In this document: positions 7,558-48,148 of the stretch, piece after piece
Layout: each line of letters begins with the position of its first letter
How positions within the stretch are numbered: the stretch's first letter is position 1
Origin: Syncephalis fuscata S228
Taxonomy: Eukaryota > Fungi > Zoopagomycota
Length of the DNA stretch: 64,000 nt
Assembly (NCBI GenBank): GCA_025786725.1
Contig: JAHLTZ010000013.1
Location: forward strand, 248,001-312,000
Direction of reading: 5' to 3'
Notes under the pieces: generated by a model
What the model saw: the letters and a program-made list of their open reading frames with translations, nothing else
Databases searched by the model: none
What the model was told of the DNA's origin: nothing
Program-made: the position numbers and the translations under genes

Positions 7558-7894
7558 AGTGTAATAGAAAGAATGGCAAAGTTGATTGAGGAATTCCTAA
7601 ACCAATTAAGTATTGTTACGTTTGGAATTTGATGGTTGCCATTAAAATTCAATCCAATCAATTGATGTTAGATCGTTACATTCCCCTATTTAAACAAACT
7701 TCTTGGGCGTTTAATATCTTTTTTCCTACATAGTTCACTCACTCTTAAATAGCGCTTTTAATTTATACTGAAAATAGTCAATTTAAGCTATATTTTATTT
7801 TATATATCTTATTTTTAAAACAAACTAAATTTAATTGATTTTTTCGTTCAACTTTAGCTACTATTGGCCGTGTTTTAATATAAGCTTTTTATTT

Positions 7895-8309
7895 TTGTAT
7901 AATTATCTCTGTATATTCAATTCAATAAATTGGGTAATATATATATATACTATTATTCATTTACCATTAATATTAATAATGTAAATACGAGTTAGATGCA
8001 TATAATACTATTCCATTTAATACAAAGCATAAATTGATATTCTTATTTAAATCTTTATGTTAGAGCAACTGCAAGAACAGCGACTGAATGAAGAAAATAG
8101 TTTAAAGCAAAAATGATGGATTATCATGCGATAGTTCCAGTCAGCATAGCAACAACAACAACATAGCATTGGCTGTCTGTGTTATCGTCAGGCAGTTGAT
8201 TATAAGAATGCATATGCCTATTTGCATAACATCTTTTGTGTTTTGCAGAAAACATACCAACTCAATTGAATATCGTGCTACTTATCTATATTCTTGTAAA
8301 ACAACACAT
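7895..8309 (+). repeat. ~415-bp dispersed repeat, direct copy of 19496-19907
   Basis: Near-identical from ttgtataattatctctgtatattc to cttgtaaaacaacacat, with only a few differences by eye. Confidence 0.95.
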
Positions 8310-9582
8310 ATTTATTAATACGGTAATTTGAATGATAAGTAATAAAACTGGTCTATTTAGAGCATCAGTATGTTATAGAATATGCCATTATTAAATAATA
8401 AATGTAATAAAAGATAAATAAATATTATTAATGTATAGCTTAGTAAAATAGTAAATATATTAACAAAAAACATTTAGCCTTTTTTTTGTACGTTAACATG
8501 CGGTAATATTCAAAGGAAAGTGATATAAATATAGCATAATGATCGAACAATGCTACATCAAACAATGCTTAAACTTAGTTGTCTACTTCTATTGTCTATC
8601 TATTTATATACAATTATCAACAGTTTGGCATTTATTTGAAGTGTTTTATGCAAAAAACATGCTAAATGACACAGCAGTAACATCCAAGTATAATTATTGC
8701 TTTGATTTTTATTTATCTTAGCTGGATAGCTGCAACTATATATGCCTTGCATCATCATTTCTTCTAAAATACTTGTTTATTCAGTCTACTTACAACATAC
8801 TGACTAATAATGTAGCCAGCTTCTATGTGTTGCAATTTACCCAAATAGAAACAAAAAACAACAAAAGTACAGTCTAAGTTTAAAAATGACTGCTAAATTT
8901 ATTCCATTGTGTTAACGAGTTTTTGGTCTGGCCCGCCTTATTGAAATACCTATTCATATGAAACAAATAGTGATTATGAGTATGCCTTTTCTTTTCCAAA
9001 TGCGCGTTGCTGCAGGTGTTTATCCAATCGATGCTAATAATAACTTCTAGATTGGCTTGTACATTCGCTATTAGACTTGTCACTTGTTTAACTAGTAAAA
9101 ACACTAATTAACATCATCTAGACTTTTTAGATAGGATTACAATAAAACTTCGGCGCTAATACTTGTATATGCGGTTTATTGGTCCACAATAGTTGTTGTA
9201 CACTAATAATCCTGTTTAACGAGTATTTGTAAAATGATGTTGTTGATTGGTGCTAAGTCTAAGTAAAATCTGCCATCTCAATCATCTACCATATGTTTTT
9301 ATTATCAAGGCCTTTGTTTGATGTTTGCATAAAGTCACAGTATTTGTGCAACTTAAATCCAGTTATTTGCAGCGACCAAATCGCTCAGGCTCATTATTAG
9401 AACTATGGTCATATACCAAGCCAAGTTTGCTCTCCTTAATATTTAAAAGCAATTGCTTTATAATGTTTGCCTAGTCGATTTATTTCGCTATAGTCTTATC
9501 AACTACCCGCTGTCTTTACTACTTTACTACTTTACTTTTTACCTTTTTCGTTAACTAAACGTGCTTTTATTGACTATTAAAT

Positions 9583-12595: not shown

Positions 12596-14553
12596 TTATT
12601 TAAATTCCACAAATTCCAACGTTTTACAATCATCAACAGCTAATCGCTCGATACTGTTTTCGCTAATCAGTATAATATCATTGCCTGCTTTTATAACCTG
12701 AGAATAATGATTACAGGGTAAACGTGCAATTACTTCGTGAGTATCAAGATCCATAATAATTAGTATGCCACAAGTGTTGCGTACAAATAACAATGATCCC
12801 AACACGTGAGGTGTTTCCAATCGATCATTGATGTCAAACATCACACTGTCTATCATGTCCAAGCGTGCATACTGTTGATCTTGTGTCTTAACAGTGTCAA
12901 TAAAAAGCTGTATTTGATGATCCCAGCGCTTATATTGATTGCGCATACCGGTATATGTGCTGGTTATGGGACATAATTCACTTAATTGAATATTATGCGT
13001 ATTAACTACTGAAATAGACTGTTTATCCGCTGGTTGCGTTATATCCGATTCATCAAATCCAAACCTTTCGTTTTTTTTCTTGGTTGATCGCCAAAAAGTC
13101 TTGCTGCTTTTAATAAGACTATTAAGGTTTCTGCGCTTGTCATTCGATGTCTTTTGCTGCTTCTCGTCCACCAGTGAGACTATAGTGCTAACACCACTGC
13201 TTGGGGAATTTGCGCTAAAACTAAATATACATCCTTCAGGTTTACTACCATCTCGAGAACCAGCAATGACCAAAAGTCGCGATAGTGATCCATCATGAGA
13301 CTGATCGTGCAACACTGGCATAAATGCAATACTGCTGATGGCAAGTCCTGGTGCTACAGCCATTTGGGCAATAAGTTTGCCATTAAATGGCGACCAGATG
13401 CAGAATAGTCCATCCTCATGTTCGGTGGCAATATAGTTAAAATGACGGAAATCCATATAAATACCCATTGTTTTCTTCTTTGCTAATATCAATGTTTTAA
13501 CACGATGTTCCTCAGATTGCTTATTGTCATAGACGATAAACCACGGATACATGGTATCTTTATCTATTCCAACCATTGTTACTTGGCGTTGTTTTGACTG
13601 ATCATCAGCAGATGGAGAATGACTGGCAGACTCTTGTGGGGATGGCAGTGTATATGTTAGCCAGTCCTTGAATTTATTCATTGGAATGTTGACTATATCT
13701 ATTAAACGTAGTGTTGATTCGCTGGCATCGTATATACGAATACCATGGCAGTAGGGGGTTTCTTCCGTAGTATCGATTAACTTGGTGGTCAATAAACGCT
13801 GATTCCAGTTTATGTCGGCCAGTATTTCACGAGAAGAGCCAACGGTCTGTGGTATGTCGAAACGACCAACAGTCTTCCAATCTGGAAAAGACCATATAAG
13901 AACTTGGTAATCACTTGTAGAATTTGTATGTCCACAGACTGCAATAATTCCTGTGGTCGGTGAAGTATAGTCAACTGCAAAACTGCGTTCTAGCTTTAAA
14001 CCTGTCAATCGTTTAGATCTAAAGAGCTGCTGTGTTGCTTGATCGTCTGTTGCTTTACCAATAATTGGTATTACAGAAATTGGCTTGTTATTCAAGTTAT
14101 TTGCCAAACGATCAAGCTGTTCTATTTCTCATTCTCTTCCAATAATAAACCGGCATTTTGCCTATCAGCCGTTTGATCTAAACCGTAACACTGTCCATAA
14201 CGACTCCAGCGTGTTCGAACAGATATACATTCTTTTAGTGTTTTGCGCCATTCTTGAGTGGGTATTGACTGGAAAGAAAGTCCATTGCTCCAAGTGTTGA
14301 AATGAAATCGGTAAGCACAGAACCAAATGATTTCATTTTGGCAAATACTATTAAAGTAAATAGCGTATCAATATACCGAGAATAAATCTAAACTAGCTTA
14401 CCTGTGAAGACGACGACATGTACTACTTAATGCAGCTATGCTACTGATATCTTGACTAGCAAAATAAAATATATTCAATAGCACGCTATCTTCTGCGGTT
14501 GCAAAAAAGCAACGAGGTGTGGCAATTGCCAATTCCGAAGTAGAAGATGCCAT
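12596..14553 (-). CDS. F-box-like protein with probable beta-propeller C-terminus; apparent 1-nt frameshift near 14125
   Basis: Exon 1 (14553-14402) ..DSVLLNIFYF..LSSTCRRLH|SICQNEIIW is F-box-like; that frame stops at ~14122 and the 503-aa ORF continues in another frame. Confidence 0.65.
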
Positions 14554-15615
14554 TGAAATGTTGAATAGAAAGAATAAGGTGGCCGTTTGAGCGTTGCCGT
14601 AGACAAATCGTTACTGGCCTTACTATCGTGTGACATTGTATTCAACATCAAACAACCGTCGCAAAAACTTGTTTGGATCTCAAACTTTTATTCAAAAAGC
14701 AGTGTTACTCTCTAAATACTTGGAAACATAGTTATATAACGCTTTATTGATTTACATTAGCTTATTTTATCAACTAGTAGCAATTGTATAGAACTTGGCT
14801 GTGTAAAGGCAGTGCCATATAATTGTTTAATACTTGGAACAACCGCTAGAGTAGTGTTAATATTGAAATCGAGCAGTAATCACTTGTAAAGTAATACATT
14901 GTTTTGTTGGTTTATATTAAATAAAATACCTTGACTATTAAAAGCAACGATTTAACATACAATTATAGCATTTAAAACTGCAACAATATGCTGCAGCTGT
15001 ATATTTGATCCATTTATTTACAATTAATACTAGCAATATACCTATACGCTAAATGTATGTAATACTATTACAATTAATTTAAATGTGAATAATTGATTTA
15101 CTTTCATATTCAAACGATAACACATCATTTAACTTGAACAAACTTCAACGCCCGCCTCACCATACGTATGGTATAAAAACGGCAATAAACAGGTAACGGA
15201 ACTTCGGCTTTTTATTCCGATACATGAGTCATTTTATAGAAATGATTAAACAAATATACATTCTACAGTATACAACGTTTAACAATGAGTGTGCCCTATC
15301 AGTTATACCTTTAACAAAAGCCAATCAGTGATCAATAAACAAAACTGTGCCCATGCTACTAACATCCATTGTTACATGATCAATAATGTTTTAGTTGTCC
15401 TAATAGGGGTAACAATAATTTGAACTATAAATAAAACAAAACAATCATTTGTTATCAACCTATTCCTTTTTCTACTTCTATATTCAATCTTATACTGCTA
15501 CTGCTAGTACCATTACTGGTTAGATTGTTGCCTAGCGAGCAATTGCTAGCAAGTAGCACATAAGCTAACTGGACCTCTACTACTATCGGAAAAGTGCCAG
15601 CTATTCTATTTCTGC

Positions 15616-17595
<1,980 letters not shown>

Positions 17596-18119
17596 GTAAA
17601 TACAGCTGATCTATTAATTAATCCAAAGCTGACAAACGCTAAAACACTAGACAACAGAGATGAAAACTAATGATTATAAATTACAACTACATCTACCGAG
17701 TAATTGACACAATACACATATATACGTGTATCCATTTACTTGATCGTCACACTGAATGTGTTTCAATGTTTGCATGTGTTGTTTTGCGTTTATTATAATG
17801 ACAATACAAATATACATGTATAATATTATATTTGAGATAGTTTATTAGTGATGTGGCTAGCTAGTTTAATTCTCGTGTAATCATAACAGGAAACGATTAA
17901 GAGTCATAGTAATGTGTTTGTGTATTTAGAGGAAATACTTAATTACTGTTAGTCGAGAGTAACAATAAACACTAATACTAGTCAACACATAATTAGTACT
18001 ATTATTTAATAATTATAAACGATTACATTATGATTTAACACTTGTTAGGTTAGAATCTGGATTTTATTTAATTAACAAATAATGACATCCATACTGTGCC
18101 ATAAAAGCTGAAATGATCA

Positions 18120-19244
18120 TTAATCAAACTTTTCATCGTTTTCGGCCATTTCACTCAAGTTAAGTAAATCTACTCGGCCACGGCCGCGCGTCTCGGTCTG
18201 GATTAAGTCGGTGATGGCACGATATTGTCCTGGATCAATAAGACAAACCTATAAGTAGATAGATGATGCGTTTCGTTAATCGCTAATAACAGTGCTATAA
18301 AATTAAATGGCTTACCAATTCATAATCATCCGACCAATCCTCTTCATCTACCGATCCGACAAGCGGCATAAGCTTCTCCTTGGCCTTTTTGGCCTCTTTA
18401 GCAGGCATGCTTACTCGAATACGCATTTGTGCCCGAGCAATAGGAATGATTTGGCGCTCTTGCAGCTGTCGAATAACTTCCAATGCCTTATGTAGCAATA
18501 AAGTTATCGTAATAAATCGTTGCACTAGTTAGCAAATCGAGCTACAGTATACAAATTATACCTACTTGTTGCTTAGCACTGCGATTAGAATTGACCGAAA
18601 GATGCAGTTGCTCAACGGCGCTTTCAATCATTGTTACTGTGTATGGCCGTTTTGTTTCCGGATTGACACATTTCTCTGCTACTGTTGTAATAATATCACG
18701 ATGCAAATTCTCTAATTGATGGGTGCGTTCTCGATCGCTCACTTGCATTTCTCCTTTGGCTAAAATCTATACTGCTCATTGTTAGCTATACCAAACTTTA
18801 AACAAGTCTGTTGGATGGCTGCTTGCCTCGCGAATAATCTCATCATCGTTGTCTTTCTTAAAGCATTTGACTAAATCTGCCTTGCTCGCAACTTGACCCT
18901 TGGAAACGTTAACAAAGATTGAATGGATTTGCAGTACTTCGTCTAAATCGGTTTCTCTATCATAAAATAGTTTATATCCAATATTAATATTTGCTACTTC
19001 GTACGCCAGTGCTTTATTAAAATAGCGTAGCTTTAATTGTCAATTAACTTACACATTGCTACGCCATTCCATTACTTTGTTTTTATAACAAGCAACTTCA
19101 AATCGTTTGCCACCCTTTTTCAGACGCACTATCGACACGTTGGTAAGCCTGTGTATGCAGTTATTATAGTTAGAATCATTGCTATTTAGTCTGATAGCGC
19201 GGGCTTACATACTTGATTTGGTTACTTGGCTGAAAGATTGACAT
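18120..19244 (-). CDS. SDO1: Ribosome maturation factor Sdo1/SBDS, multi-exon
   Basis: [74 protein letters not shown]. Confidence 0.96.
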
Positions 19245-19495
19245 TGTAACTGAATGCAAGTGTGTAAAAAAAGAAAAAAGCGGTACAGCGCATCGTTACG
19301 GTTTCATGATCAATTTAATATTTATTTGGTCAATGTCGTGAGTCACGATTGAGCATATTGATAATGGCAATATACAGTCATCATTTTATTTCTTTGTCGA
19401 TATATATATAATATGGAATAAATGGCAATTTTTCTAAAAAAATATTTGTATATTGTATTTTAAAAGCAATAGGTATTAATATAATTTTCTTATTC

Positions 19496-19907
19496 TTGTA
19501 TAATTATCTCTGTATATTCAATTCAATAAATTGGGTAATATATATATACTATTATTCATTTACCATTAATATTAATAATGTAAATACGAGTTAGATGCAT
19601 ATAATACTATTCCACTTAATACAAAGCATAAATTGATATTTTATTTAAATCTTTATGTTAGAGCAACTGCAAGAACAGCGACTGAATGAAGAAAATAGTT
19701 TAAAGCAAAAATGATGGATTATCATGCGATAGTTCCAGTCAGCATAGCAACAACAACAACATAGCATTGGCTGTCTGTGTTATCGTCAGGCAGTTGGTTA
19801 TAAGAATGCATATGCCTATTTGCATAACATCTTTTGTGTTTTGCAGAAAACATACCAACTCAATTGAATATCGTGCTACTTATCTATATTCTTGTAAAAC
19901 AACACAT
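19496..19907 (+). repeat. Repeat segment shared with 7895-8309; overlaps the outer end of the left inverted arm
   Basis: Direct sequence match. Confidence 0.95.
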
Positions 19908-22900
19908 TTTAAAATGTAGGTCGTTATAATATGTAGACATAAAAGGTTTGGTCAGCAACCAACCACAGGCTCTAATGTCGTCTGTAGTACCGGTTCAGAA
20001 CAAGTAGCGCAACATAATAAGATCGATGAAATGCGATACAGTTGCCACTGACTATAAGAAAGATGTTGTCGTGAGAGAATACAAAATAAAGTGGTTTAAA
20101 AAGCATTTGCACTTAAGCTAGTAAGCATTCAGCCATTAGCACTAACTGGATGGCATATATGGTATGTGTAATTATAGGCAGTGGGTATATACTATCAGTG
20201 TGAAGAAAGAGAAAGGAAACTGTAATGGCATAGGCTGTGAACTGTGGATCCTGGCAGCCAATATTTATAAAGACGCGTTTAAATTATTAACAAGCGGAAT
20301 GTGAATAATAAAAGTCAATCTACATAACAAATTGGTAGATCGTAGAGCACGTTCTAAGTAAATAAATAGTGCATTAGAAATAAAAGTCATTTAGCACCAA
20401 AAACTACTCATTATCATAAAGTGTGTTGTTAGTAAAATAAAGCAATGATAACAATATGTTTGCAAACACTTCAGCGTTGTGTTTATTGCTACTACAGCTC
20501 TGATCATAGATTGACATCAACTATTGTGTCTATAGATGTTTAGATAATCATTCAGCCATGCATGCATGTGCTACGTTGTACTGGCCCTTGCAGTGTATAA
20601 AGCTACGTGTTTATTCCTGTTTTCATTTAACCAGTTTCACTACACTCTATAGTTCAATATAAATAAGATGTATTTTATTTCTGTTTAGCAGCATTAAAAC
20701 TCAATCGGTAGATTATGTGACACGTCGTTTTTAAAGGAAATCAAGCCATTTCATTTAACTAATAAAGTAATAGAATCAGTTATATCGATCCACCTAATTG
20801 TGTGCAGAATGGCAAGCATTTTGAAAAAGCAGGCGCATTTGATAGTGTCGGAAAATCGCTAGTATGACGGCACAATCAATTAAAAATGGTTGCATTTGGC
20901 AAATCTTTGGGTGCATTGGCCAATTGAATTGATCTTGCGCGGAAATGGCCAGCGAATAAAAAACGAAAGCGAGTAGGTTTGGAAAGAGGGAAGGGATTAT
21001 GATCCGATATACAGATCCGATAGCATCCGTGCACCACAATGTTCCAACTAGGTGCAATACGCCAATAAACAGCCACCACGTACTCTTTGCCAATACTGTC
21101 GATCCTAATTGATAGACATGTCTTAGATTAGGCTCATAAGGGTGTGTGGGCCCATTTTTGCTCGCTATCCCGCCTTCTTCTGTTTCTAGTTGTTAATGCG
21201 CTGTAACCACACTAGTTTACAGTATAAGCATCAGGTATGGTAGTTACATCCAGTGGCGTGGGATCCCTTTGCAGGTTGATCATGATATACTGTGTTCTTG
21301 CTTGTGGGCTGTGTTGAATGTATGGCACAATATTTGCAGACTATTGCGCTATACTGGCTCAGCAATTATATGGCTGCCTGTAATGGGTGGCTGTATACTA
21401 GCGTAGTGCGGAGACATGTGGAAGTTCTGGGTGCGCAGTATCGATATTTAGCAAGTTGGATATTGCTGATGTACACCCACCTCATGTTGATGCGGCAACC
21501 TGTGATGGGTAGCCATATGTTAGTGTCCATTTGTATTGAATGCGCGCTGGAGGTGTGGAGTAGTATTTAACTTGCGGAATGCTACCGCCACACACTAGAA
21601 CTGATGTGGTAAGTAAACACTTATGCTAAGTGAATATTTACTACCATGCTGTTTACTTGTGGGTATTAGTAGAAGATTGTAGTTAACATTAGTCTTAAAT
21701 ATCATCCAAAACTCCTGGTTTACTAGTGAATACAACATAGTGATGGAGCTTACTAGGGAAAGTTTTGTGGGACAGCTAGATGATGTTTATACGATCGCTT
21801 GCGACGTAGTAAAGGCTAACTGTTATATTGCACCTTTTAATAATGCATCAGTGTATGGCAATGCGTTGTTTAATTGCAATGTATTATGATATTCGTGTGC
21901 TCATATTTGCACACTAACTACAACTGGGTAAACCAGTAGCCTAGTAGTGCTTATGGATGCGCTTGAATTGTTATGGTATGTCGTATTGCTTATTAAACCG
22001 CATTGCCATCTTGACAATGCTAGTGTAGTTCTATAAGCTTCTGACATATGATAGTTGCGCCTAGTGGCGGTATCGTCAGTTCATCCGGTGGACGCATAGT
22101 TCTATAATCATTGCCATGATTAACAACTTTTAATATCGCTTTTAGTCTATAATATTTAATAACATATTACAGCAAAAAATGGTTACATCACAGGCCCATC
22201 TTAAGCAACATATAAACAACGACCGGTCAAGTGTTTGTTTATTGTCACTACTAAATAATACTGACACATTTTTGTTATAGCTATTCGACCATTGGTACCA
22301 GGACGACAAGTGCAATCTGGATACATTTGCCATCGTGTTCCACCATTTTGCGTGCAATTTACAATACCAATATTGTCTTTATTGACAGAAGTCACAGTTG
22401 CAGTACTATGTACTGCTGCTGGTAATACCTCTTGGTATGGGTTTCCAAATGGAAGTATATACCCATTTGGTTTTCATCCGCCAAGTGGTGATTGGTGTTG
22501 TAATTACACATCTGCTAAATGTGCTGGTTTGATTGAAGTGGTGGTAATAAAGTGGGAGGTGGTGGGACTTATATACATATATTTAAATAGAAGACTTTAA
22601 TAAGTAGCATGTATAGGTGTTTATTCCAGTAATATAGTATTATAATAATGACTTCATTATTGTTGTTTATATATTTGCTTATTATATTTACTTGGGTTAA
22701 AAAGTTATTGATACTTGAATAATTAGAATACAACCAAGTGCATCCGATACAACTATCGCATATTATATAGTTTGTTTATAATTAATTTATTACCTATTTG
22801 GTATGACTTGATGATCAAATGACTACATTTAATAGTATTTGCCTAATTGAACTAGATATTCAACCTATTGAACATGGAACCGGGCGGTGAGTTTTATTAA

Positions 22901-23005
22901 TAATAAAAATATTTGCTACTATAGATTTATTATTTAGTATGTATATATTCTTAGTCTATGCATATCATTACCACTGTAGATTCACACTGCCATATATCAT
23001 TATAT
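19693..23005 (+). repeat. Left arm (~3.3 kb) of a long inverted repeat
   Basis: Reverse complement of 26862-30167 from aaatagtttaaagc to catatatcattatat; mirrored ORFs in the track (21292-21570+ = 28295-28573-; 22142-22357- = 27510-27725+). Confidence 0.97.
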
Positions 23006-24422
23006 GGTATATTAGACACATTTTATTTTTTATTTACTTTAACAAATCTACTCATTCCATTCACTACGTTATACACGCTATAATTTTAGTACCGCTATTT
23101 ATACAATGAAAATTGTATATTCATATCATTTTATATTATTTCATACTACTTTGACATTAATATATTCAAAATGCCATTTTTATTGCAAACTATTTTTATA
23201 AGATTCAGGTTAATTCGTTTATTTCATTTATTGACCACTTACATTCTAGCTTCAACATTGCCATTCATATTTCTTACATTGTATATTTATCATATTATAC
23301 ACCATTATACTGCCTAATAATATTTAATTATCAATTGAAATTGTTTATTTATTGGTGCAGCATAATATTGCAATAACGATTTCATTATTATCACTTTTGT
23401 TAGTTTGCCGTGATTATCGACTACAGCAATAAAATACAATCAATTTCTATATTTCTTTGTCTCTATTTGCCTTTCACAAAGTATGCCATTGAGCACATTG
23501 TAAATTGCGCTTTTTGGCAAAGCTTATAGATTCTAACACATGATTTGTCCATTAAGTTTTAACATTGTCAAGTAGAGATATAAATAGAACACGTACACTG
23601 CATAACAAAGGCGTGTTGAAGTCAACTGGATGAAAACAATGTTAAACATGTGATTTTATTAGTTTTATTGTCAATATGTAACATAATAATATTGTACATA
23701 CATGCAGGCAAAATGGCTATTCAAAATACTGATGGCCGAGATAGTTTATTTTACAATTTGTAAAAACAACTGTAATATCAGTAACAAAATATAGTACAAA
23801 ATACTACATTAGAATAGTTGTATAATAAAATAGTATTGTGGATTTATTACTTTGAACTCCAAATAGCACTGTAACATTGTCCATTCGTTTACATTCATGC
23901 AGCACGTTAGTGCAGTTATTCGACGGAAGTACATATGCCAATCTTTGTACCTGTTTATTCAGTATGTGTGTATAACACTAGAAAGCTTCAATACTAGTGT
24001 TCAAAGTGTTGCAATGCAGCTAGAAAATAAAAATACATTGTTCTTTACACCTCGTATTTATTCTGATTGTTTCAGTTAACAAACAAGCATAATCCTGCAT
24101 AAATCATACCTATTTTGTGCTAAATATTTTCAACATTTATTTATAGCATCAAAGCTTTTAAGCATTGATGCTCAAAACATCATAATGCATTTAGAACAAT
24201 ATAATTATATTGTTTCTTTATACACATTGCTTTGTTCTAGTTGTTTTTAACCAATAAACGCAATTGCTCTAAATAAGTCATAAGTTTATTTTAGTTTAAA
24301 TACTGCTAGTATTTCACCATCAACTCATGTTTCTTTACTTCAAACAGCTACTCAATCTCAACCTTTGCTTCTTTATCTCAAACAACAATTTTTTGTCACA
24401 AATTTTACTTTATTTTAACATC

Positions 24423-26464
24423 ATGGATCCTTTAAACACGCAACAATTCACCCCTGCGCTACCATCAAGTCAGCTAAGTCGCAATGATGCTTTTTACGAA
24501 AAAGTTCCACATTGCTGGGACAATTTGTCGCAAAATGAGCGCGATAATGCTGTTGGCTGGGTCGAGGTGTTTGACGAGGCCATTCAGGGTATGTCAAAAT
24601 AATACTAAATAAGCACGTATCTAAATACTAGATGTTTAGAATTTATTTTATTTGCCAATCAAGATTTTACTGTTGGTACTGGTCAACAATGGTAAGTAAC
24701 AGTAGACTTTATATATAACAACAAATTAAAAATGTATATATGTCAAATAGCACTTATCAGTTAGATTGGTTTGGTATGCCACAAGTTTTCTTTACATTTA
24801 GCAGTAAGTACTTATACTCTAATAAACAACTAATTAGAAATAATGTAGACAAAAAACATTACGTGTACAGTAAGTAAATAGTTATTAAAATATTTATACT
24901 AATTAGTAAATTAGAAACGATTACAAAGCTAATGGTTAGTTAATAAGTAATAAAATAAAGTATTAACATTTAATTTAGTTAATATCGTCAAACAATTCAG
25001 ATCAATTAATTCGACATGAAAAGATGTTTATTAAAATGCCTGACTTTAGAAGTAGTACCAATTATTCATTATTATTAGTATTATTATTAACCATAAGTTG
25101 TAGCAACATTTACTGTTCATAAACTTGAAATCGCCATTGTCATACCAGAAGAAACAACCGACGAATACAATCAAGTAAGTTTATAATTATAATTAAACAC
25201 CAAAATAACATATTTGCTACCATTGTAGAAGGTCGGTAGGCGATTTGCGCTTACTACAAAAGACCTTGGTCGGTAAGTATTTAGACTAATTAAAATAAAT
25301 GGATAGCTAATTGCTTATAACAGAGGTCGTACTGGCACAGTACGCCTAGCATTTGATTTCCGAACGCACCAACGCGTTGCTGTTAAGGTTTTACGGCACG
25401 GCCGTAATAATGAATACATTAGAAATGAGGCTAGGACCTTAAGTACAGTGAGAGGCTATCCTTATTTTATAAATGCAGTAAAAGTGATAGCCACCGCCAG
25501 AAAAACGTACTTTGTTCTTAATTATATGCGTGGTGGTAATTTGACTAGCTATATTAATCGTCGTGGCCCACTTCCAGAAATGGAAGTAAAAGATATTTTT
25601 AGGCAACTATTTGAAGGTGTTTTTGTAAGTATTACAATAACTAGTTATTAAAACGCTAACTTTGTATTAGTGTTTGTATACTTCAAGTATTGCGCATGGC
25701 GGTAAGTTTATTTATTTATATATGTTACCATTATTAATTAGTACTATTATTGTCATCATTTAATTAGACATCAAAGTAACTAATTAATTAATTTAATATT
25801 AAGCATAATTACTAACAGCCAAATAGCCCGATAATATATTGTTAGATATGGACTGTCAATTTCCCGAAATTGCGTACACAGACTTTGGAACGACTCATCG
25901 GGTAGGACCTATCTCACAATGCGTTCTTTGTGGCACCAGGCCATATGTGCGCCCGAGGTGATATTATCATCACATTTACGGGAAAATATACTGGCAGCTG
26001 CCAGAGCTGAGGAAGATCAAACAATTTACAACAAGCTAACTTCACCTCCACTAAGTATCCATGGGTATGACACACCCATCGACATGTGGAGTTTGGGAGT
26101 GATACTCTATGAGATGCTATTAGGTAAGCGTGAACAAAAAGCAAAATATTGTACCAACTAGTTATTTTACATTGTAATTAGGACATTGTCCTTATGATGG
26201 CGGACAAAGTGCATATAAATATATAAAAAATATATTACAAACACCACTTGATTTTGGACAAGAAAATCAACTAAGCAGTGAAGGTAAGTTAGGTATTTAT
26301 TCAATAACAATGGCTAACATTGCGCAGCTATTGAGCTGATAAAACAGCTACTTGACATTAACAAGCGCACACGGCTTACAGCGGAAGATGCATTGAACTC
26401 TCCCTGGTTTGATGACATGCGAGAAGCGAATGCAACTGAAATAAATGAACAAATAAATATTTAG
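24423..26464 (+). CDS. Ser/Thr kinase of CAMK/Chk2-Mek1-like architecture (degenerate FHA-like N-terminus, non-RD HGD), 14 exons, one apparent frameshift near 25947
   Basis: Exons 24423-24588, 24640-24691, 24751-24803, 24849-24869, 24915-24934, 24979-25051, 25104-25174, 25229-25272, 25324-25624, 25671-25701, 25768-25775, 25827-26123, 26182-26283, 26328-26464. Motifs GRGRTG, VAVK, HGDIKPDN, DFG, CGT..APE, DMWSLGV, RLTAEDAL.SPWF. Confidence 0.88.
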
Positions 26465-26861
26465 AATAAGAATAGTGCTTTATTTTAATAATATGGACAA
26501 TCCTATATAGAAAAAGGAGCTAGCCTAGAAGCATGTATATAGCAATGTCATAATAACACATAAAAGTGTTTTTTGGGTGTAAATGGCTTTTATTTTTTAA
26601 TTGATTTTTAATTGATCTTTTAATTTACTAAATATATGTTCTATAATAATGAGTAGTTCTAAGGGTAAAATGACATTTATTCTTGATGCATTATTGCTTT
26701 ATACTTATAATAGCAATGGTATAGAAGATAATGCTGTACCAGTACTGAGCAATTTTGCAATATTAATATAAAAGCGCGATTTGCTATTATGCTGTTACTG
26801 TATGTGTACATATGTCATCATACTGACCGTGTTGGCTATATTTACTGTTGTTTTTCTATTT

Positions 26862-29800
26862 ATATAATGATATATGGTAGTGTGAATCTACAGTGGTAAT
26901 GATATGTGTAGACTAAGAATATATACATACTAAATAATAAATCTATAGTAGCAAATATTTTTATTATTAATAAAACTCATCGCCCGGTTCCATGTTCAAT
27001 AGGTTGAATATCTAGTTCAATTAGGCAAATACTATTAAATGTAGTCATTTGATCATCAAGTCATACCAAATAGGTAATAAATTAATTATAAACAAACTAT
27101 ATAATATGCGATAGTTGTATCGGATGCACTTGGTTGTATTCTAATTATTCAAGTATCAATAACTTTTTAACCCAAGTAAATATAATAAGCAAATATATAA
27201 ACAACAATAATGAAGTCATTATTATAATACTATATTACTGGAATAAACACACTATACATGCTACTTATTAAAGTCTTCTATTTAAATATATGTATATAAG
27301 TCCCACCACCTCCCACTTTATTACCACCACTTCAATCAAACCAGCACATTTAGCAGATGTGTAATTACAACACCAATCACCACTTGGCGGATGAAAACCA
27401 AATGGGTATATACTTCCATTTGGAAACCCATACCAAGAGGTATTACCAGCAGCAGTACATATACTGCAACTGTGACTTCTGTCAATAAAGCAATAGTTGG
27501 TATTGTAAATTGCACGCAAAATGGTGGAACACGATGGCAAATGTATCCAGATTGCACTTGTCGTCCTGGTACCAATGGTCGAATAGCTATAACAAAAATG
27601 TGTCAGTATTATTTAGTAGTGACAATAAACAAACACTTGACCGGTCGTTGTTTATATGTTGCTTAAGATGGGCCTGTGATGTAACCATTTTTTGCTGTAA
27701 TATGTTATTAAATATTATAGACTAAAAGCGATATTAAAAGTTGTTAATCATGGCAATGATTATAGAACTATGCGTCCACCGGATGAACTGACGATACCGC
27801 CACTAGGCGCAACTATCATATGTCAGAAGCTTATAGAACTACACTAGCATTGTCAAGATGGCAATGCGGTTTAATAAGCAATACGACATACCATAACAAT
27901 TCAAGCGCATCCATAAGCACTACTAGGCTACTGGTTTACCCAGTTGTAGTTAGTGTGCAAATATGAGCACACGAATATCATAATACATTGCAATTAAACA
28001 ACGCATTGCCATACACTGATGCATTATTAAAAGGTGCAATATAACAGTTAGCCTTTACTACGTCGCAAGCGATCGTATAAACATCATCTAGCTGTCCCAC
28101 AAAACTTTCCCTAGTAAGCTCCATCAATGTTGTATTCACTAGTAAACCAGGAGTTTTGGATGATATTTAAGACTAATGTTAACTGCAATCTTCTACTAAT
28201 ACCCACAAGTAAACAGCATGGTAGTAAATATTCACTTAGCATAAGTGTTTACTTACCACATCAGTTCTAGTGTGTGGCGGTAGCATTCCGCAAGTTAAAT
28301 ACTACTCCACACCTCCAGCGCGCATTCAATACAAATGGACACTAACATATGGCTACCCATCACAGGTTGCCGCATCAACATGAGGTGGGTGTACATCAGC
28401 AATATCCAACTTGCTAAATATCGATACTGCGCACCCAGAACTTCCACATGTCTCCGCACTACGCTAGTATACAGCCACCCATTACAGGCAGCCATATAAT
28501 TGCTGAGCCAGTATAGCGCAATAGTCTGCAAATATTGTGCCATACATTCAACACAGCCCACAAGCAAGAACACAGTATATCATGATCAACCTGCAAAGGG
28601 ATCCCACGCCACTGGATGTAACTACCATACCTGATGCTTATACTGTAAACTAGTGTGGTTACAGCGCATTAACAACTAGAAACAGAAGAAGGCGGGATAG
28701 CGAGCAAAAATGGGCCCACACACCCTTATGAGCCTAATCTAAGACATGTCTATCAATTAGGATCGACAGTATTGGCAAAGAGTACGTGGTGGCTGTTTAT
28801 TGGCGTATTGCACCTAGTTGGAACATTGTGGTGCACGGATGCTATCGGATCTGTATATCGGATCATAATCCCTTCCCTCTTTCCAAACCTACTCGCTTTC
28901 GTTTTTTATTCGCTGGCCATTTCCGCGCAAGATCAATCAATTGGCCAATGCACCCAAGATTTGCCAAATGCAACCATTTTAATTGATTGTGCCGTCATAC
29001 TAGCGATTTTCCGACACTATCAAATGCGCCTGCTTTTTCAAAATGCTTGCCATTCTGCACACAATTAGGTGGATCGATATAACTGATTCTATTACTTTAT
29101 TAGTTAAATGAAATGGCTTGATTTCCTTTAAAAACGACGTGTCACATAATCTACCGATTGAGTTTTAATGCTGCTAAACAGAAATAAAATACATCTTATT
29201 TATATTGAACTATAGAGTGTAGTGAAACTGGTTAAATGAAAACAGGAATAAACACGTAGCTTTATACACTGCAAGGGCCAGTACAACGTAGCACATGCAT
29301 GCATGGCTGAATGATTATCTAAACATCTATAGACACAATAGTTGATGTCAAGCTATGATCAGAGCTGTAGTAGCAATAAACACAACGCTGAAGTGTTTGC
29401 AAACATATTGTTATCATTGCTTTATTTTACTAACAACACACTTTATGATAATGAGTAGTTTTTGGTGCTAAATGACTTTTATTTTTAATGCACTATTTAT
29501 TTACTTAGAACGTGCTCTACGATCTACCAATTTGTTAGGTAGATTGACTTTTATTATTCACATTCCGCTTGTTAATAATTTAAACGCGTCTTTATAAATA
29601 TTGGCTGATAGGATCCACAGTTCACAGCCTATGCCATTACAGTTTCCTTTCTCTTTCTTCACACTGATAGTATATACCCACTGCCTATAATTACACATAC
29701 CATATATGCCATCCAGTTAGTGCTAATGGTTGAATGCTTACTAGCTTAAGTGCAAATGCTTTTTAAACCACTTTATTTTGTATTCTCTCACGACAACATC

Positions 29801-30167
29801 TTTCTTATAGTCAGTGGCAACTGTATCGCATTTCATCGATCTTATTATGTTGCGCTACTTGTTCTGAACCGGTACTACAGACGACATTAGAGCCTGTGGT
29901 TGGTTGCTGACCAAACCTTTTATGTCTACATATTATAACGACTACATTTTAAACATGTGTTGTTTTACAAGAATATAGATAAGTAGCACGATTTCAATTG
30001 AGTTGGTATGTTTTCTGCAAACACAAAAGATGTTATGCAAATAGGCATATGCATTCTTATAATCAACTGCCTGACGATAACACAGACAGCCAATGCTATG
30101 TTGTTGTTGTTGCTATGCTGACTGGAACTATCGCATGATAATCTATCATTTTTGCTTTAAACTATTT
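26862..30167 (-). repeat. Right arm (~3.3 kb) of the long inverted repeat
   Basis: Reverse complement of 19693-23005 with scattered substitutions and 1-nt indels. Confidence 0.97.
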
Positions 30168-30505: not shown

Positions 30506-31612
30506 ATGTCATTATCTTTCATTTCTCGTTCTTTAAGAACAAGATTGTTGCTTGGTCCCAATTCTGGGCTATTGGTATGATAGTTGCTAGAAACTTGATA
30601 ATATTTGCTTAGCTGATAGAAATTTACAGACAGCAATTGGAACCAAACGGTTTAGCACTGCTACTCGACAAAGTCAGGCACTAATCCCATTTGTAATAGA
30701 GCAAACAGTAAGTTAATAGCATTCAAAAGCTGGCATATGTTTTTAATTAGATGGATTAACATTAGAGCCGCGGTGAACGCTCCTATGATATATTTTCTCG
30801 TTTATTGAAAGAACGAATTATTTGCCTCAATGGAGAGGTAAATTTGTTGATATTCTGTGTACACTAATGCCAATAGCGCGTATATAGGTGCACGATGGCC
30901 TGGCGTCCAGTCTAGTTGCACAGCTATTGTTTCTAGAGTCAGAAAATCCAGAGAAGCCAATCAGCATGTATATTAATAGTCCAGGAGGCAGTGTTACCGC
31001 TGGTATGGCCATTTACGATACTGTAAGTTCTTATTTTTTATATTACGACCATTAATTAACCCAATATCCCATTAGATGCAAGTAGGTTGCTTAGATTACA
31101 AATAAACAATGAAACTCAATATCATATTGCTTGTAGTATATTCAATCGCCGGTATCCACACTTTGTATAGGACAAGCATGTTCAATGGGCTCATTATTAC
31201 TAGCCGGTGGTAAGCTTAATTTATTTCATGATTAATACGCTTAAAACTAATACAATTAATTACCGAGTAGGTGCACCTGGTAAACGATTTGCTCTGCCCA
31301 ATTCCAGTATTATGCTACACCAGCCATCGGGAGGTGCATCCGGTCAAGCCAGTGATATTGCTATCCACGCACGTGAAATACTACGTGTACGTGATCGTCT
31401 AAATCAAATTTATCAATCGCACACAGGACAAGATGCCGCCACTATTGGTAAGTAGTAATTTGATATCTATTGGATAGCTAACGTATATATATATGGTGTG
31501 TACAGAAAAAACACTTGAAAGAGATTTTTTTATGACTGCAGAAGAAGCAATGAAGTTTGGTGTCATTGACAAGATATTGGAACGACGTGCTGCTACTCAA
31601 ATAATTGCTTAG
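30506..31612 (+). CDS. CLPP: Mitochondrial Clp protease proteolytic subunit, multi-exon
   Basis: [60 protein letters not shown]. Confidence 0.96.
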
Positions 31613-36794: not shown

Positions 36795-38070
36795 TCAAAT
36801 GCAGTCCTCGGTCACATTTTCAGATAATTCGGTTGTAGTAGTCGTTGTTGGTGAGGTCAATTTACGCTGTGGAATTACTTTGAGGAAAGCCTGTTTCCAG
36901 TCACGGCAGCCACACCATTCAGTGAGAATTTCCACCACTAATTAATTTATCAATACAATAAGTTATAATTGCATTATTATACTAATTTAACAATATTTAC
37001 CATGATTCACTGTAAGTACACGTCGATGACTAGTAGCGATATAGTCGCCGATGGGTAATCGAGCTGTTCGTACGCCCAATCCTGTTGCTCGCTGATGCGT
37101 TAAATTCTATTACGTTATTATTATTATTATTATTATTTAATAAATTTGTATTTTATAATATTGACATTTACCTTGTGATGGTTTCTATCGACTAGTCCGC
37201 CAATAACATAGGCAGTGCCTGGTTCAAGTGTTTTAAGCACTGTGTCAGCATCAGCCGACAAATAGACAAGTTGATCGGCGGGAAATAGTGTAGTGTAGGA
37301 TGTAGCTTCTTGTCGATAACGCTGCCATCGATGTGCATTAGGACTTACCTGATTCATTTGTGCAGCAAGTCGCTCGCTATAGTCGGTGAGCACGAGTCCG
37401 CCGGCTGCTGCACACTTGGCAACTTTTTGTGCACTGTAGCATCGACTGATTTGCAGTGCCAACGAATGCAGCTCCTAATAGTGATGAAATTAAAAGAAAG
37501 CCATCAGAAGCAATTAATGGTGAATATCAAAATTTCGTAATGATGCTATAATATCTGTACATCTTACTCCTTTCCTACCTTATCTGTCATAAGATCGTCA
37601 TATGCACAATCAAGTACGAGAGTGATATCGATGGGTGGCATTGCATCATCAGGTGGGCGTGGATGTGAACGTCGACCAGTAGAGTGCCGTATTGTATCCC
37701 TGTGCTTATTATCGCTGTTGTCGTTGTCGTCACCGTCGTTATCGTTAAGTGTCCTTTGACGTTCACGACGAGCTAGCTTTATTTGTTTGCGTCGTTCTCG
37801 CCATAGTGGTGCAATTACCTGCTCACGTGCTTCTCTAATACGCTTCTTTAATGCATTGCGTGAGACTGGCTCTCCTGTCACGGGATCTATAGTAGCAATA
37901 CCAAGTGATTCCGCAATTTCTAACGTAGATCCCGCTCGACCCGGAAGTGGTGGGACAACAGTTGTAGTCGCAGAAGTAGGCTTTACCTCTAACTCAACTT
38001 CTTCAGCCGCGATAGTTGGTTGTTCGGTAGGCTCTACGTTTGAATCGGCAGCGCAGGTGGAATCGGTCAT
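36795..38070 (-). CDS. TRM10: tRNA (guanine-9-N1)-methyltransferase, multi-exon
   Basis: LDCAYDDLM..LVYLSADA..YVIGGLVDRNHHK..TARLPIGDYI..VLTVNHVVEIL..DWKQAFLKVIPQRK. Confidence 0.93.
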
Positions 38071-39283
38071 AATTATGGATATAAAAACAAAAAAAAACAA
38101 AAAGCGAAAGCAATTAAACTTTTACCTTTTTATTTACTCATTTCACTTCCTTTTTTAATACTTTTAGACACAATTAAACACCTATTCATTACTATAACAT
38201 ATATAATATTGCACCCAACATTAATTAATTCATGTTTAATTATCAATACAATAATGTAATTAATTAGTTATTTTATGTTTCTTTAATATATATATGTCAT
38301 TATGATATTAATTGTTCAAAATGCCATTTATTTAGTCAGATTGACTATAGAAGATGACTGTTTAATAAACAACATCTATACTAATTATATTAATATTGAT
38401 CTTACATCACAGATATGCTCAAAATGCAATAGTAGAAAATTAGAAAATAAAAGCGATCGTTTAGATGCAATAATTTACATCGTATGTAGATACAATAACA
38501 ACAAATGACATAAAATCGTAATCATATGGCTTTTATTAATATTCTATCAATCTTTCTACACATGGTCAATAACAATGATAATTAGTCTTAAATGTTCTAA
38601 AGAAACCAAATAGTATGGTATATCGTTTATTTAAATCAGTTTATTAAAAATATTTTAATAGGAAGTAATAAAGTTGCAACACTAAAGCATTTTTACTAAT
38701 TCTTTGCTCGTTTCTTTATAGTTTTTGCTAATACTTTTTTCGTTAACTAATGTAGAAACAGTCATTTTTTATATAGAATTTAATGTTGAATTTAGCATTG
38801 TAGATAAAGTTAAATTGTAATATTCACTTTGTAACTTTGTTTAGTAGTAATTTTTTGCTTATTTCATTTTTAACGCATATCTTATTAGTTTAACTGATGA
38901 GGACACTCATATAACAATAGGCAGCATAAGCAATGAATGATTATTTATCGTACTTCTCAAGCACATTGCTATAGATTTCCCTTGATTAATAACAAAGTGT
39001 TTGTTAGTTCGTAAAGTCGCTCTAAATATTTTAGCAGCATGTTTTGGCACGCGTCCATCGTTTGTAGCGTATCATTTAAACTAAACACTAATTAACATTG
39101 TTAATACACTGCATAACAAAACATATCATTGATTTTAGACATGTTAAGCTGGTTAGCTGGTTTTAAAGCAAATATTAGTAGGTATTGGATTTACAAAAGC
39201 CATTGTTGACAATCACTATAAAAATGTGATAAATTAATCTTATACTGATTTTAGCAATCAAATATAAAATAGCTATGCAAATT

Positions 39284-40615
39284 TTATTCGAGTACTCGTG
39301 CATAAGTTAGCAAATCTCGATCAGTAATGTAGCGCTTGTAAAAATCTTCTTCAATGTTTATACAAACCTCGATGCCACGTTTGCCTGTTTCAGGAAATGG
39401 CGGGGTGTCAAATAAAGTTATATTGCGCATGCCAGAGTACATGGATCGTCTAAGGCATATTGGTGGTCCATCGCCAAAATCCACGGCATAATAGCCGCAT
39501 TTTGACCAATTGGTACTATTAGTATCGTTATCACGCAGCCAGCCAGATGCAGCCTCGGCTAGTGATTTATTTCGATCCACGCTTGCACGCGCTAGCCATT
39601 CTTGTACGGTGGCTGCTTTAGACTTATTGACAGATTGGCGATTTGCCATAGCGACACTGCCCAATGAGCCATTCATAACATCTCCCGCAACCATCGAGAA
39701 TATTGAAGTATTAAATGCATTGCCAAAATAATTGTCGGGGACATCAGGTAGGCTGGGCCGCATGTTAATGGCGGTTAGAAGTTTAATCGGCTTATCTTGA
39801 GGCACTTGTCTGGCTCGAACGCTTGTACGCCACAATAAGGCCATTATCGCATCGAACGTCGAGATCCAACCAGTTTTCTGATCCGTATTGTCGAGTGTTG
39901 CAATTGCATCGGATTTTAGCTGTTCAAGTTTATCGGGACTAAACTGAAGAATAATACATTGTTTCAAGGACAAACTAGTAGCTGCTGCGGATGGCGTATC
40001 GTCAGTTGTACGTTTTTCATTTGAAAATAAGTCAAAAGTTAATGGAAAACGTAGTAATTGGCGGTTATGAACAGGCAGTGTAAAAGTGTCCCCTTTTACC
40101 AATGCCGTCCATGTTTTTAACATCATTGACCAGCCAGTCCCATCAGCAATACTATGGTTGCACGCCGTACACATCACCAAGCCAGAGTTGTTTGCAAATC
40201 GAGTAATTCGAACAGCAAATAATGGCAAATCCTCTGATGCTGGCTGCGTAATGGCCTGCCATTCAGGAGATAGAATTCTATATGGCCAATTAGGTTCAAA
40301 CTCTGATATGTCGCTATCAGAATACGTTTCAGTAAAAGGGACACCTTTATCCGAGGCTTTCACCTCATATTCACCGTCGTTGCGACGAATTAATCGGCCT
40401 GCTACAATTGGATACTGTTCAAGCGTTTGTCGTAAACCCGTTATCAAAATTTCCGATGTCATAAAATTGGCCTTTTTTTGGTGATTTTTATAAAAAAAAA
40501 ATCGCTGTGGATATACTGGAGCAGTTATATAATCTGCATGGCTTAGTTGGTATGTTGTTTGAACTTTATCACCATTTGGTGTTAGCCAAACTTTCGTAGT
40601 ATCGCCTATAGTCAT
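39284..40615 (-). CDS. HXXXD/BAHD-type CoA-dependent acyltransferase, intronless
   Basis: YPIVAGRL, NHSIADG (HXXXD), NYFGNA, VDFGDG (DFGWG-like). Confidence 0.92.
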   Translation of the reverse strand: MTIGDTTKVWLTPNGDKVQTTYQLSHADYITAPVYPQRFFFYKNHQKKANFMTSEILITGLRQTLEQYPIVAGRLIRRNDGEYEVKASDKGVPFTETYSDSDISEFEPNWPYRILSPEWQAITQPASEDLPLFAVRITRFANNSGLVMCTACNHSIADGTGWSMMLKTWTALVKGDTFTLPVHNRQLLRFPLTFDLFSNEKRTTDDTPSAAATSLSLKQCIILQFSPDKLEQLKSDAIATLDNTDQKTGWISTFDAIMALLWRTSVRARQVPQDKPIKLLTAINMRPSLPDVPDNYFGNAFNTSIFSMVAGDVMNGSLGSVAMANRQSVNKSKAATVQEWLARASVDRNKSLAEAASGWLRDNDTNSTNWSKCGYYAVDFGDGPPICLRRSMYSGMRNITLFDTPPFPETGKRGIEVCINIEEDFYKRYITDRDLLTYARVLE

Positions 40616-40831
40616 ATTGAAGTAATCAACAAAAGGGGAAACGATTTGGTATTTAATAGCTAAGTTACAGCTGTACTACTATTTATATACTACTGAAATC
40701 CGGCTTGGTATACGTAATTCCAATTTATTTATCTATTGACAGTATTAATATTTCTATTGGTTACACGCTTCTGTATAACAAGACATTTCAGCTATAAATG
40801 CTTTTCATTTTTTTAGTTTATCAATAAAACT

Positions 40832-44187: not shown

Positions 44188-45260
44188 TTACGGTGTATAA
44201 GGTGGTGGTGGAAGCTCTTGACCATTAATGCTATTTGATAAGCTTGTTTGCCCGTTAATTTCTGGTATCGCCAAATCATTGCTTATGGATGTAGCGTATC
44301 TTGATGCCTCGTCCATCGATACACTGTTACTGTCGCCCATATAAATGATCATTAAAGCTCTATAAAAATTATCATTTTGCTCCTTGATCAATCTATTTTC
44401 AATTTTTCCAGAAAAAATATTATAGCCGACAAGTTCTATAGGAGACACCTTATCAACAGAACAAAATACTAAATAACCATTTTCAATGTACGCATCTGAT
44501 AATTATATAAGCATATTTACGAACACAGTATAGTAAATGTTTAACTCACCACGTACGAAAGCATTATGAAGTGACCATTTACGCAATTTCATTTGCTTTA
44601 CAGCTATTAGATCAATTGTTAGTATGCAATTACAGTAATTGAAATTCACTTGCCAGTTGTAACTTGTAATAGTACATTATTCACTGTTTCTCGCGTAACG
44701 CCGAATGTTCCAGTATACGCGTAAATAGTCTCCTTACACTTTGGACGAACAATCAAATAGCAATTGTAATCAGGTATATCAGAAAGCTTTTTAATAACAG
44801 AATAAAAGTACATTGGTGGATCATTTGTTTCGAATCTGTTGTAATCTCCTGAATACATACTCTAACAGTAGATTTCAGCATGTTATCAGTTTAGAATGAT
44901 AATCGACATGCTTACCTTGTATATATTGAAGGGCAAATAGTTAGTTTGACCATTTGCACATATAACTGTAGCACTGTGCTTTTCACCCTTTACAGAATAT
45001 GTTGCTTCCATAGCATGTACACCATTTACTGGATATTTAACTGCGTCAATAGTAAGAGCTTTGATATTAAATGCGCCAGATTTGCCCAATTTATAATTAG
45101 AAACAGAGTTTACTATTGCAATATGATTAGTATTGCATCGCGGATAAGTTCTGCATGTTTTACCTTCTTTAGCAAATAAACCAGGCAATGCCAGTACATT
45201 TTGACCAGCTGATAGTAACACCAGTAGGGGTAAAAGGCACTTGGTTCCAAATAGTATCAT
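44188..45260 (-). CDS. Secreted protein, probable pseudokinase fold, 4 exons
   Basis: Signal peptide ending VLA-LP; exons splice in frame (one GC-AG intron); NNVLLQVTTAVKQMKLRKWSLHNAFVRDAYIENGYLVFCSVDK resembles kinase subdomains VIa-VII without HRD/DFG. Confidence 0.7.
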
Positions 45261-47364: not shown

Positions 47365-48148
47365 ATGTCTCAACAAAGAATTAAATTTGTTGCAGAAGGA
47401 GCTGCAGTACGGGAATGCACACAAACACCTTCGTTTGGAGACGAGGCTATAGCCGTTGTCGACTTTTACCGCAATCTTGTTTTACCTACGGATAAGAAGG
47501 AACAAAATAAGCAAGTTACGCCGTCTGTTGCTGCTTCTACACTAACCATAGCTGATGCAGAGCCAGTATTGAGCGTAACTGTCGATTCGTCTATAATCGC
47601 TACGACACAGCCAGTTGATTTACCTGACTCTTTATTGTGGTGCAAAGTGTGCAACATTGCTCTGTCGACAGCTAGCATGGAACAGCATCAACACAGTATT
47701 GCTCATTTAGCATCACGTAGCGACTATCCTGACCTGCCAGATCCTATCACCTTAAATGAGGTATTTGCAATGCACCATAAGCATAGATAACATACGTTTA
47801 TTTTAATACTGATAACTAGACAAATCTCGGCTATCGTATGCTTCGACAAGCAGGATGGGAGGACGAACAAGGATTGGGAGTTGGATCTCAAGGACGGCGC
47901 CATCCTGTTTCGGCCCGAATGCGACCGAAACAACTTGGACTTGGTGCAAAGCGACGTCGTTCGCCATCACCAATATCATTGGTAGGTAGTTGGATAATTG
48001 TATTCAAATTGTAGCTTGTTATGTGCACTAATACTTGTAATACACATTATTGCAGCCGGACAATAGTCTTATGCAACGCGATGTTGCTCGGCAAACAGAT
48101 GCGGATCGTCTTGAGCGACTTGAATTATTAGCATATTTGAAGCGGTGA
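47365..48148 (+). CDS. G-patch domain protein with a C2H2/matrin-type zinc finger
   Basis: WCKVC..HQHSIAH; NLGYRMLRQAGWEDEQGLG..QGRRHPV..LGLG. Confidence 0.85.

Follow-up and report, generated by a model that had tools for sequence, protein, structure and literature searches.

A kilobase-scale inverted repeat with transcribed, apparently non-coding arms around a kinase gene in the fungus Syncephalis fuscata S228

Overview

The window analysed here is a stretch of 64,000 nucleotides from Syncephalis fuscata S228 (assembly GCA_025786725.1, contig JAHLTZ010000013.1, positions 248,001 to 312,000 of the forward strand). Within it two arms of 3.3 kb, almost identical and inverted relative to each other, enclose a spacer with a single protein kinase gene; arms and spacer together are called the cassette. 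Inside each arm is a copy of a sequence, termed the core, that is transcribed and spliced and in which no conserved open reading frame (ORF) was found. Core and kinase both have many paralogs in the genome, and members of the two families commonly lie side by side. The inverted repeat probably originated within this dispersed two-gene family, either as an inverted segmental duplication or as a 3.3-kb tract of arm-to-arm conversion. The initial annotation of the locus overlooked three things: that arms and kinase belong to large dispersed families, that the arms are transcribed, and that a third, 441-bp copy of arm sequence is present.

A transcribed and spliced RNA gene in each arm

In a gapped BLASTN alignment the two arms (Table 1) are reverse complements, 99.2% identical over 3,316 columns with 13 mismatches and 13 gap positions, and a repeat search recovers the inverted match as six collinear blocks covering both of them. 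The near-identical 3.3-kb arms of the initial annotation are thereby confirmed, as is its spacer of about 3.86 kb with one kinase gene, now measured at 3,856 bp and with Pkinase matches on the exons. Its remark that the arms differ by real substitutions as well as indels is right for the substitutions, of which there are 12 events, while many of the single-base indels are probably assembly errors. A search of the genome with one arm returns more than 40 loci that share arm positions ~827-2930 (20519-22622 of the window) at 67-72% identity, and one locus, on contig C257, with 84%; some family copies are cores truncated at the 5' end.

Four read runs were compared over 21100-27099. One of them, X2, is labelled only 'RNA?' and behaves as RNA. 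Its major contigs have depths of 860-2,000 on 21100-22526; after ~22526-22580 the depth falls about 70-fold. It is 21 at 22579-22914 and 1-5 on the 3' exons of the kinase, with most of the spacer at 0, all of these being contig depths rather than a proper measure of expression. An Illumina adapter is fused directly after position 22526, where the conservation of the family also ends, which suggests a frequent RNA end at this site. The spliced joint 22224>22280 was seen in X2, and in most of 26 aligned paralogs the corresponding intron keeps a GTAAGT-type donor, a TACTAAC-type branch point and a YAG acceptor. With sharply bounded depth, an adapter-fused end and a spliced intron, the core is transcribed as a discrete RNA with a probable 3' end near 22526. 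Overhanging ends of X2 contigs resemble other paralogs, C257 among them, so further family members are expressed as well. The conserved block begins with a TATA-like box and closes with an AATAAA-like signal, which suggests that RNA polymerase II may make this RNA.

Several lines of evidence speak for a non-coding core. Within the region that matches the core, the copies listed have no stop-free stretch of more than ~150 codons, nor do they share one in frame. Across 27 aligned core copies the longest open frame has a median of ~40-80 codons, every one of the six frames of the majority-rule sequence is interrupted by 34-49 stops, and no small ORF is both kept across the family and present in the arms. 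Neither Pfam (at meaningful E-values) nor Rfam (at the gathering score or E <= 1) returned a match to the core. Seven arm ORFs correspond to no annotated protein in the public collection, where three of four single-exon ORFs from elsewhere in the window are annotated. Protein-coding arms were rejected on the combined result of six-frame ORFs, tblastn against paralogs (equal in all six frames), the ORF scan of the majority sequence and Pfam. An alternative genetic code or a mitovirus-like ORF was rejected as well, as reassigning stop codons, in whatever way, leaves every frame closed. Codon-phase conservation is flat in the core and is given no weight, the kinase control being itself only weakly periodic. 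A conserved 24-mer has no match among metagenome contigs, a full-text literature search found nothing comparable to the core-kinase family, and we know of no described eukaryotic family like it.

Conserved RNA structure

For the central 570 nt of the core, RNAalifold applied to 18 paralogs predicts a consensus fold of -94.1 kcal/mol with 128 pairs, against -49.6 +/- 5.6 in 60 column shuffles that preserve conservation (z = -7.9) and -32.3 kcal/mol for the reverse complement. Doubly compensated pairs number 35, where the shuffles have a mean of 13.5 and a maximum of 24. A covariance model was made for a 130-nt sub-domain, R1, and aligned to 31 copies: 97.2% of its cells are paired. Shifting the partners by 1-3 columns lowers this share to 25-50%, and none of 500 shuffles scored as high as the real alignment in pairing or in covariation. 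Many of the changes within R1 are interconversions of GU, GC and AU, which preserve pairing on this strand only. The 3' blocks of the core give alignment-fold z-scores of -2.1 and -4.8, and the folding of single sequences is weakly significant (z = -1.4 sense, -0.08 antisense). Taken with moderate confidence, these values indicate that the central domain has a conserved, strand-specific structure with compensatory changes.

Pairing of core and kinase genes

In the genome R1 has 45 strong matches (109-150 bits) and 14 distant ones (~76 bits), and a search with one exon of a family kinase gives 57 matches. At 36 of the 59 R1 loci a family kinase exon is found 2.2-3.7 kb away on the opposite strand, in divergent (head-to-head) arrangement. 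Exceptions are three convergent pairs, which include the right arm of the window and C257, and one tandem pair, which by local gene order is the left arm of the window. Kinase paralogs adjoin core paralogs, and among the closer copies an uninterrupted alignment at about 80% identity takes in the kinase, the core and the region between them. The genome-wide BLASTN comparison of arms and kinase that the initial annotation had envisaged thus finds both to be multicopy, the paralogs having the internal core in common and not the arm termini. The 14 distant R1 copies look like an older subfamily of the core-kinase module.

A further sequence, R, accompanies many of these units. A complete copy of this dispersed repeat measures ~0.5 kb and has short tandem sub-repeats at the 3' end; a first look gave 241 candidates, 74-79% identical. 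Canonical units have R copies in direct orientation on the 3' side of both genes, and many solo copies occur as well. Each arm of the cassette has a 5'-truncated copy (Table 1), and a diverged piece is found at 26565-26701. R is a candidate miniature inverted-repeat transposable element (MITE), short interspersed nuclear element (SINE) or solo terminal repeat.

The distant R1 matches include C1:996831, C35:568261, C89:14228, C320:15564 and 61653, C371:1224 and C306:704112. In 13 of the 14 a second, weaker match is adjacent, possibly a tandem domain, and in 11 a divergent kinase exon lies 2.4-2.6 kb away.

The kinase gene and the mosaic spacer

The catalytic loop of the enclosed kinase, HGDIKPDNIL, is of the non-RD type and is assembled from three exons: one ending at 25701, an 8-nt micro-exon (25768-25775; flanked by AG and GT) which contributes D-I-K to HGDIKP, and one starting at 25827. 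The micro-exon is kept in the C257 and C318 paralogs and is missing from the alignment of the C30 copy. A downstream intron (26119-26176, GT..AG) is spliced in X2, where the joint 26118>26177 was seen. An FHA domain was not confirmed by Pfam, the exons having been searched singly. Relative to three paralogs, one nucleotide is missing near 25949 (~25944-25951), producing a frameshift just before the APE motif. The gene may accordingly be a pseudogene, or the frameshift may be an indel error of the assembly, which is possible because reads contradict the assembly at several single-base indels.

Identities along the spacer form a mosaic: positions 23196-25723, on the left, match kinase loci on C30 and C35:355k at 82%, and positions 24291-26861, on the right, match C257 at 82-99%. 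In the gene itself the 3' half is 90-99% identical to C257, and the upstream region and the 5' half are 82% identical to C30 and C35:355k. Such a mosaic points to frequent exchange between paralogs.

History of the locus

The C257 locus is colinear with the kinase and the right arm: homology passes the inner end of the arm into the spacer and is ~99% beside the junction. Because C257 has the same unbroken arrangement, the adjacency of right arm and kinase is read as ancestral. Homology of the left arm stops abruptly between 23005 and 23006, and the sharpness of this inner junction marks the left arm as a later inverted copy or the edge of a conversion tract. Of the substitution events between the arms, one falls in the 2,104-bp core and 11 in the remaining 1,209 bp (Fisher p = 1.2e-4), a contrast that speaks for added constraint, or for conversion, acting on the RNA gene of both arms. 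Repeat-induced point mutation (RIP) was considered as a source of the differences and rejected, no consistent dinucleotide context being present. The arms are far closer to each other than to the C257 paralog (82-90%), although ages read from these figures are confounded by conversion between loci, as the ~99% stretch of C257 beside the junction illustrates.

The sequence of events that we favour is as follows. A palindrome-like inverted duplication, or a 3.3-kb conversion tract, would have arisen inside a core-kinase family in which one partner is a ~1.9-kb spliced, ORF-free and structured RNA gene and the other a non-RD Ser/Thr kinase. The usual layout of this family is head-to-head; at the present locus a convergent core would have been kept downstream of the kinase, as in C257, and a second, inverted copy of the core gained upstream of it. 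The near-identity of the arms would reflect recency, gene conversion or both, with additional constraint on the RNA gene, and homologous recombination between the arms could invert the spacer.

Several observations weigh against this account or parts of it. The third partial copy crosses the left outer junction, so that at least two steps, or conversion, are required and a simple insertion is in conflict with the data. With paralogs so closely related (the effective sequence number of R1 is 1.22), covariation is evidence of moderate weight, and folding of the 5' block of the core gives no signal (z = -0.7). The core could still contain a translated ORF of very small size. That X2 is RNA is only a guess, its contig-based depths come with a warning against quantitative use, the span compared begins ~600 nt into the core, and neither the 5' end nor the poly(A) status was seen. 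Finally, the dominant RNA variant at 22370-22406 fits neither assembled arm and occurs also in a DNA run of another sample; the transcripts may stem from an allele missing from the assembly, or the assembled arms may be in error.

Alternative explanations

The strongest competitor to duplication or conversion within the family is that the whole R-kinase-core-R unit (~5-6 kb) is mobile, as a composite or non-autonomous element, and that the inverted repeat came from two insertions or an aberrant transposition. About 60 dispersed units, several of them at contig ends, would fit this, as would the local clusters of copies 95-99.8% identical in both orientations (C224), the direct orientation of R at the flanks of units, the resemblance of solo R copies to solo terminal repeats, and the 5' truncation of some cores. 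Nevertheless we consider it unlikely, since no ORF for a transposase, reverse transcriptase or integrase was seen in the ~100 kb of family loci inspected (no genome-wide survey was made), the arms have no flanking target-site duplication (TSD), the intron is kept in all copies, which argues against RNA-mediated copying, and unit boundaries vary from locus to locus with the mosaic identity typical of gene conversion between paralogs. The initial annotation had proposed a more specific element, a Foldback or Pack-type transposon that disperses a captured kinase. A single gene between long inverted arms is what such an element would look like, yet there is no TSD, the arm termini (the outer ~400 bp) are absent from other loci in the own-genome search, the arms contain an expressed gene and not sub-repeats, and the partner kinases found elsewhere stand beside a single core (divergent at 36 loci) rather than between inverted arms; this origin is very improbable. 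Least probable of all is the analogy, also drawn at first, with inverted-repeat centromeres of the Candida tropicalis or Komagataella type. The geometry is similar, with 3-kb arms and an AT-rich centre of ~4 kb, but few sequences seen here are transcribed as strongly as the arms, the centre holds a spliced gene, the flanks are active housekeeping genes, and only two core-bearing inverted repeats were found among 371 contigs.

Wrong duplication of one arm by the assembler must also be weighed. Single-base insertions relative to the assembly are found at 22228, 22370, 22477, 22616 and 22729 in DNA and RNA short-read contigs, and in the case of the additional C after 22477 all three runs that cover the site contradict both arms. 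The assembly of the region thus appears to have residual indel errors, and many of the single-base differences between the arms are probably of this kind. The number of such indels, typical of long-read consensus errors, and the sites at which reads contradict both assembled arms are what an artefact would predict. Twelve substitution events separate the arms, however, their outer flanks differ, and an independent short-read DNA contig (run X1) joins the right end of the spacer to the arm with right-arm-specific bases. Real differences and this crossing of the junction make a collapsed assembly unlikely. As weaker evidence, low-coverage DNA runs cover the arm continuously and the spacer patchily, as a 2:1 copy ratio predicts. 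An artefact therefore has a very slight chance of being the explanation, lower still than that of a Foldback element. The idea of a functional switch, in which regulated flipping alters expression of the kinase, is improbable to a lesser degree. Arms of 3.3 kb at 99% identity are good substrates for recombination, and a related locus is present in both spacer orientations (see below). Against this, only one orientation is assembled here, the flanks are housekeeping genes and not heterochromatin, the kinase is barely expressed and frame-shifted as assembled, and the other invertible locus encloses an unrelated gene. Moreover, the arms are symmetric and the promoter moves along: with the 1.4-kb upstream region of the kinase inside the spacer, the layout implies that a flip changes nothing within +/-3.3 kb.

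A second inverted repeat and inversion of the spacer

The cassette spacer occurs once and is assembled in one orientation; the contigs of the read runs are short and unable to span a 3.3-kb arm. A second core-bearing inverted repeat is more informative. At 37920-47652 of contig C224, arms of 2.85 kb (37920-40773 and 44798-47652; 99.6-99.8% identical) with core copies inside enclose a spacer of ~4 kb that holds a gene for a GTPase resembling the signal recognition particle (SRP) receptor. Contig C357 (31 kb; 13884-23956) represents the same region, with flanks 99.4-99.7% identical and a spacer that aligns only in reverse. The two contigs could be inversion isomers, haplotypes, or the result of the assembler's choice of orientation. 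By inspection of opposite-strand R1 pairs, the cassette and the C224 repeat are the only core-bearing inverted repeats found among the contigs. The initial proposal that recombination between the arms could flip the kinase is thus upheld in principle, both orientations being assembled at C224/C357, while its other half, an element that disperses the kinase, finds no support. We infer from the arrangement of the sequences that flipping would be a by-product of the repeat and not a switch.

Comparison with known systems

Palindromes with gene conversion between their arms are known at the scale of 0.01-3 Mb, for instance on the human Y chromosome. Like the cassette, they have near-identical inverted arms with expressed genes, a unique spacer, and constraint or conversion within the arms; the spacer-inversion polymorphism has its counterpart at the sister locus (C224 versus C357). 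The cassette differs in being of kilobase size and in having non-coding arm genes, and conversion within it is only inferred. In the flip/flop system of Ogataea and Komagataella, inversion carries the mating-type (MAT) locus into or out of silencing chromatin. Kilobase inverted repeats bound the segment there as here, whereas the cassette has no MAT genes, is flanked by housekeeping genes, and encloses a gene that keeps its own promoter.

For the core RNA the nearest parallels are of a different kind. The RUF6 (GC-rich element) non-coding RNAs (ncRNAs) of Plasmodium falciparum, ~135 nt long and made by RNA polymerase III, lie among the var genes and are likewise a multicopy ncRNA family physically coupled to a rapidly evolving family of protein genes. 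The core RNA, in contrast, has a length of ~1.9 kb, a spliced intron and conserved structure, and its genes pair head-to-head with kinase genes, one for one. Large retrotransposon derivatives (LARDs) and terminal-repeat retrotransposons in miniature (TRIMs) are non-autonomous long terminal repeat (LTR) retroelements with a conserved, structured, non-coding internal domain. The core unit resembles them as a multicopy, kilobase-sized, ORF-free structured sequence with direct repeats (R) near its ends. It departs from them in that LTR-type termini, a TSD, a primer-binding site and a polypurine tract were not identified (no dedicated test was made), in keeping a spliceosomal intron in every copy, and in having a host-type kinase gene on the opposite strand.

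Taken alone, the inverted repeat is an ordinary small palindrome that may flip; its contents are unusual. As a working guess, the core may be a cis- or trans-acting structured long non-coding RNA (lncRNA) that is co-regulated with, or acts with, its partner kinase. A bolder proposal, possible though on balance doubtful, is that the core defines a new class, a ~1.9-kb spliced structured ncRNA that has multiplied to ~60 copies as the obligate head-to-head partner of a non-RD kinase gene, whose product may have an FHA-like N-terminus. RNA and kinase would then form a module, the RNA acting as regulator or scaffold of its partner kinase or being sensed by it, and the inverted repeat would be among several products of recombination within this fast-evolving system. 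Should the coupling be functional, it would represent a previously unseen RNA-kinase partnership, with ~60 natural variants available for studies of covariation and binding. The locus and C224/C357 together also make a convenient fungal example in which to study how inverted repeats drive inversion and gene conversion.

Setting of the locus

The cassette lies between divergently transcribed housekeeping genes, as first described: exon matches place SBDS/SDO1 on the minus strand at 18295-18748 and ClpP on the plus strand at 30888-31455. A comparison of the outer flanks of 19693 and 30167 found no direct repeat in common and thus no TSD, in agreement with the initial annotation, to which none was visible. 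The outermost part of the arm (positions 1-400) matches only the cassette locus and the local 441-bp partial copy in the own-genome search; the last 218 bp of this third copy also match the outer end of the right arm, at 98.2%.

Table 1. Features of the cassette and related sequences in the window (window coordinates)
Feature	Position	Strand	Remarks
Left arm	19693..23005	+	Sharp inner end; derived copy or conversion-tract edge
Right arm	26862..30167	-	Continues unbroken into spacer, as in C257 paralog
Spacer	23006..26861	.	3,856 bp; occurs once; mosaic of paralog identities
Core RNA gene, left copy	20519..22526	+	Family-conserved block; depth drop in RNA run and adapter-fused end
Core RNA gene, right copy	27341..29343	-	Coordinates carried over from arm alignment
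Core intron	22225..22279	+	55 nt, GT..AG, spliceosomal; right-arm equivalent ~27588-27642 (-)
Structured central domain of core	21150..21720	+	Right-arm equivalent ~28145-28715 (-)
R1 covariance model matches	21394-21527; 28338-28471	+; -	
Kinase gene	24447..26415	+	Multicopy family matching core partners; Pkinase on 25307-25648 and 25835-26158
R, 5'-truncated copy	20095..20420	+	Arm positions ~400-730; right-arm copy ~29442-29767 (-)
Third partial copy	7872..8312	+	441 bp, 97.5% identical to 19473-19910; crosses outer junction of left arm

The inner ends of both arms fall inside copies of a short dispersed or tandem 'tail' repeat (22760-23102 and 26796-27107), which has six occurrences within 3 kb on C318 (L018:63-3004).

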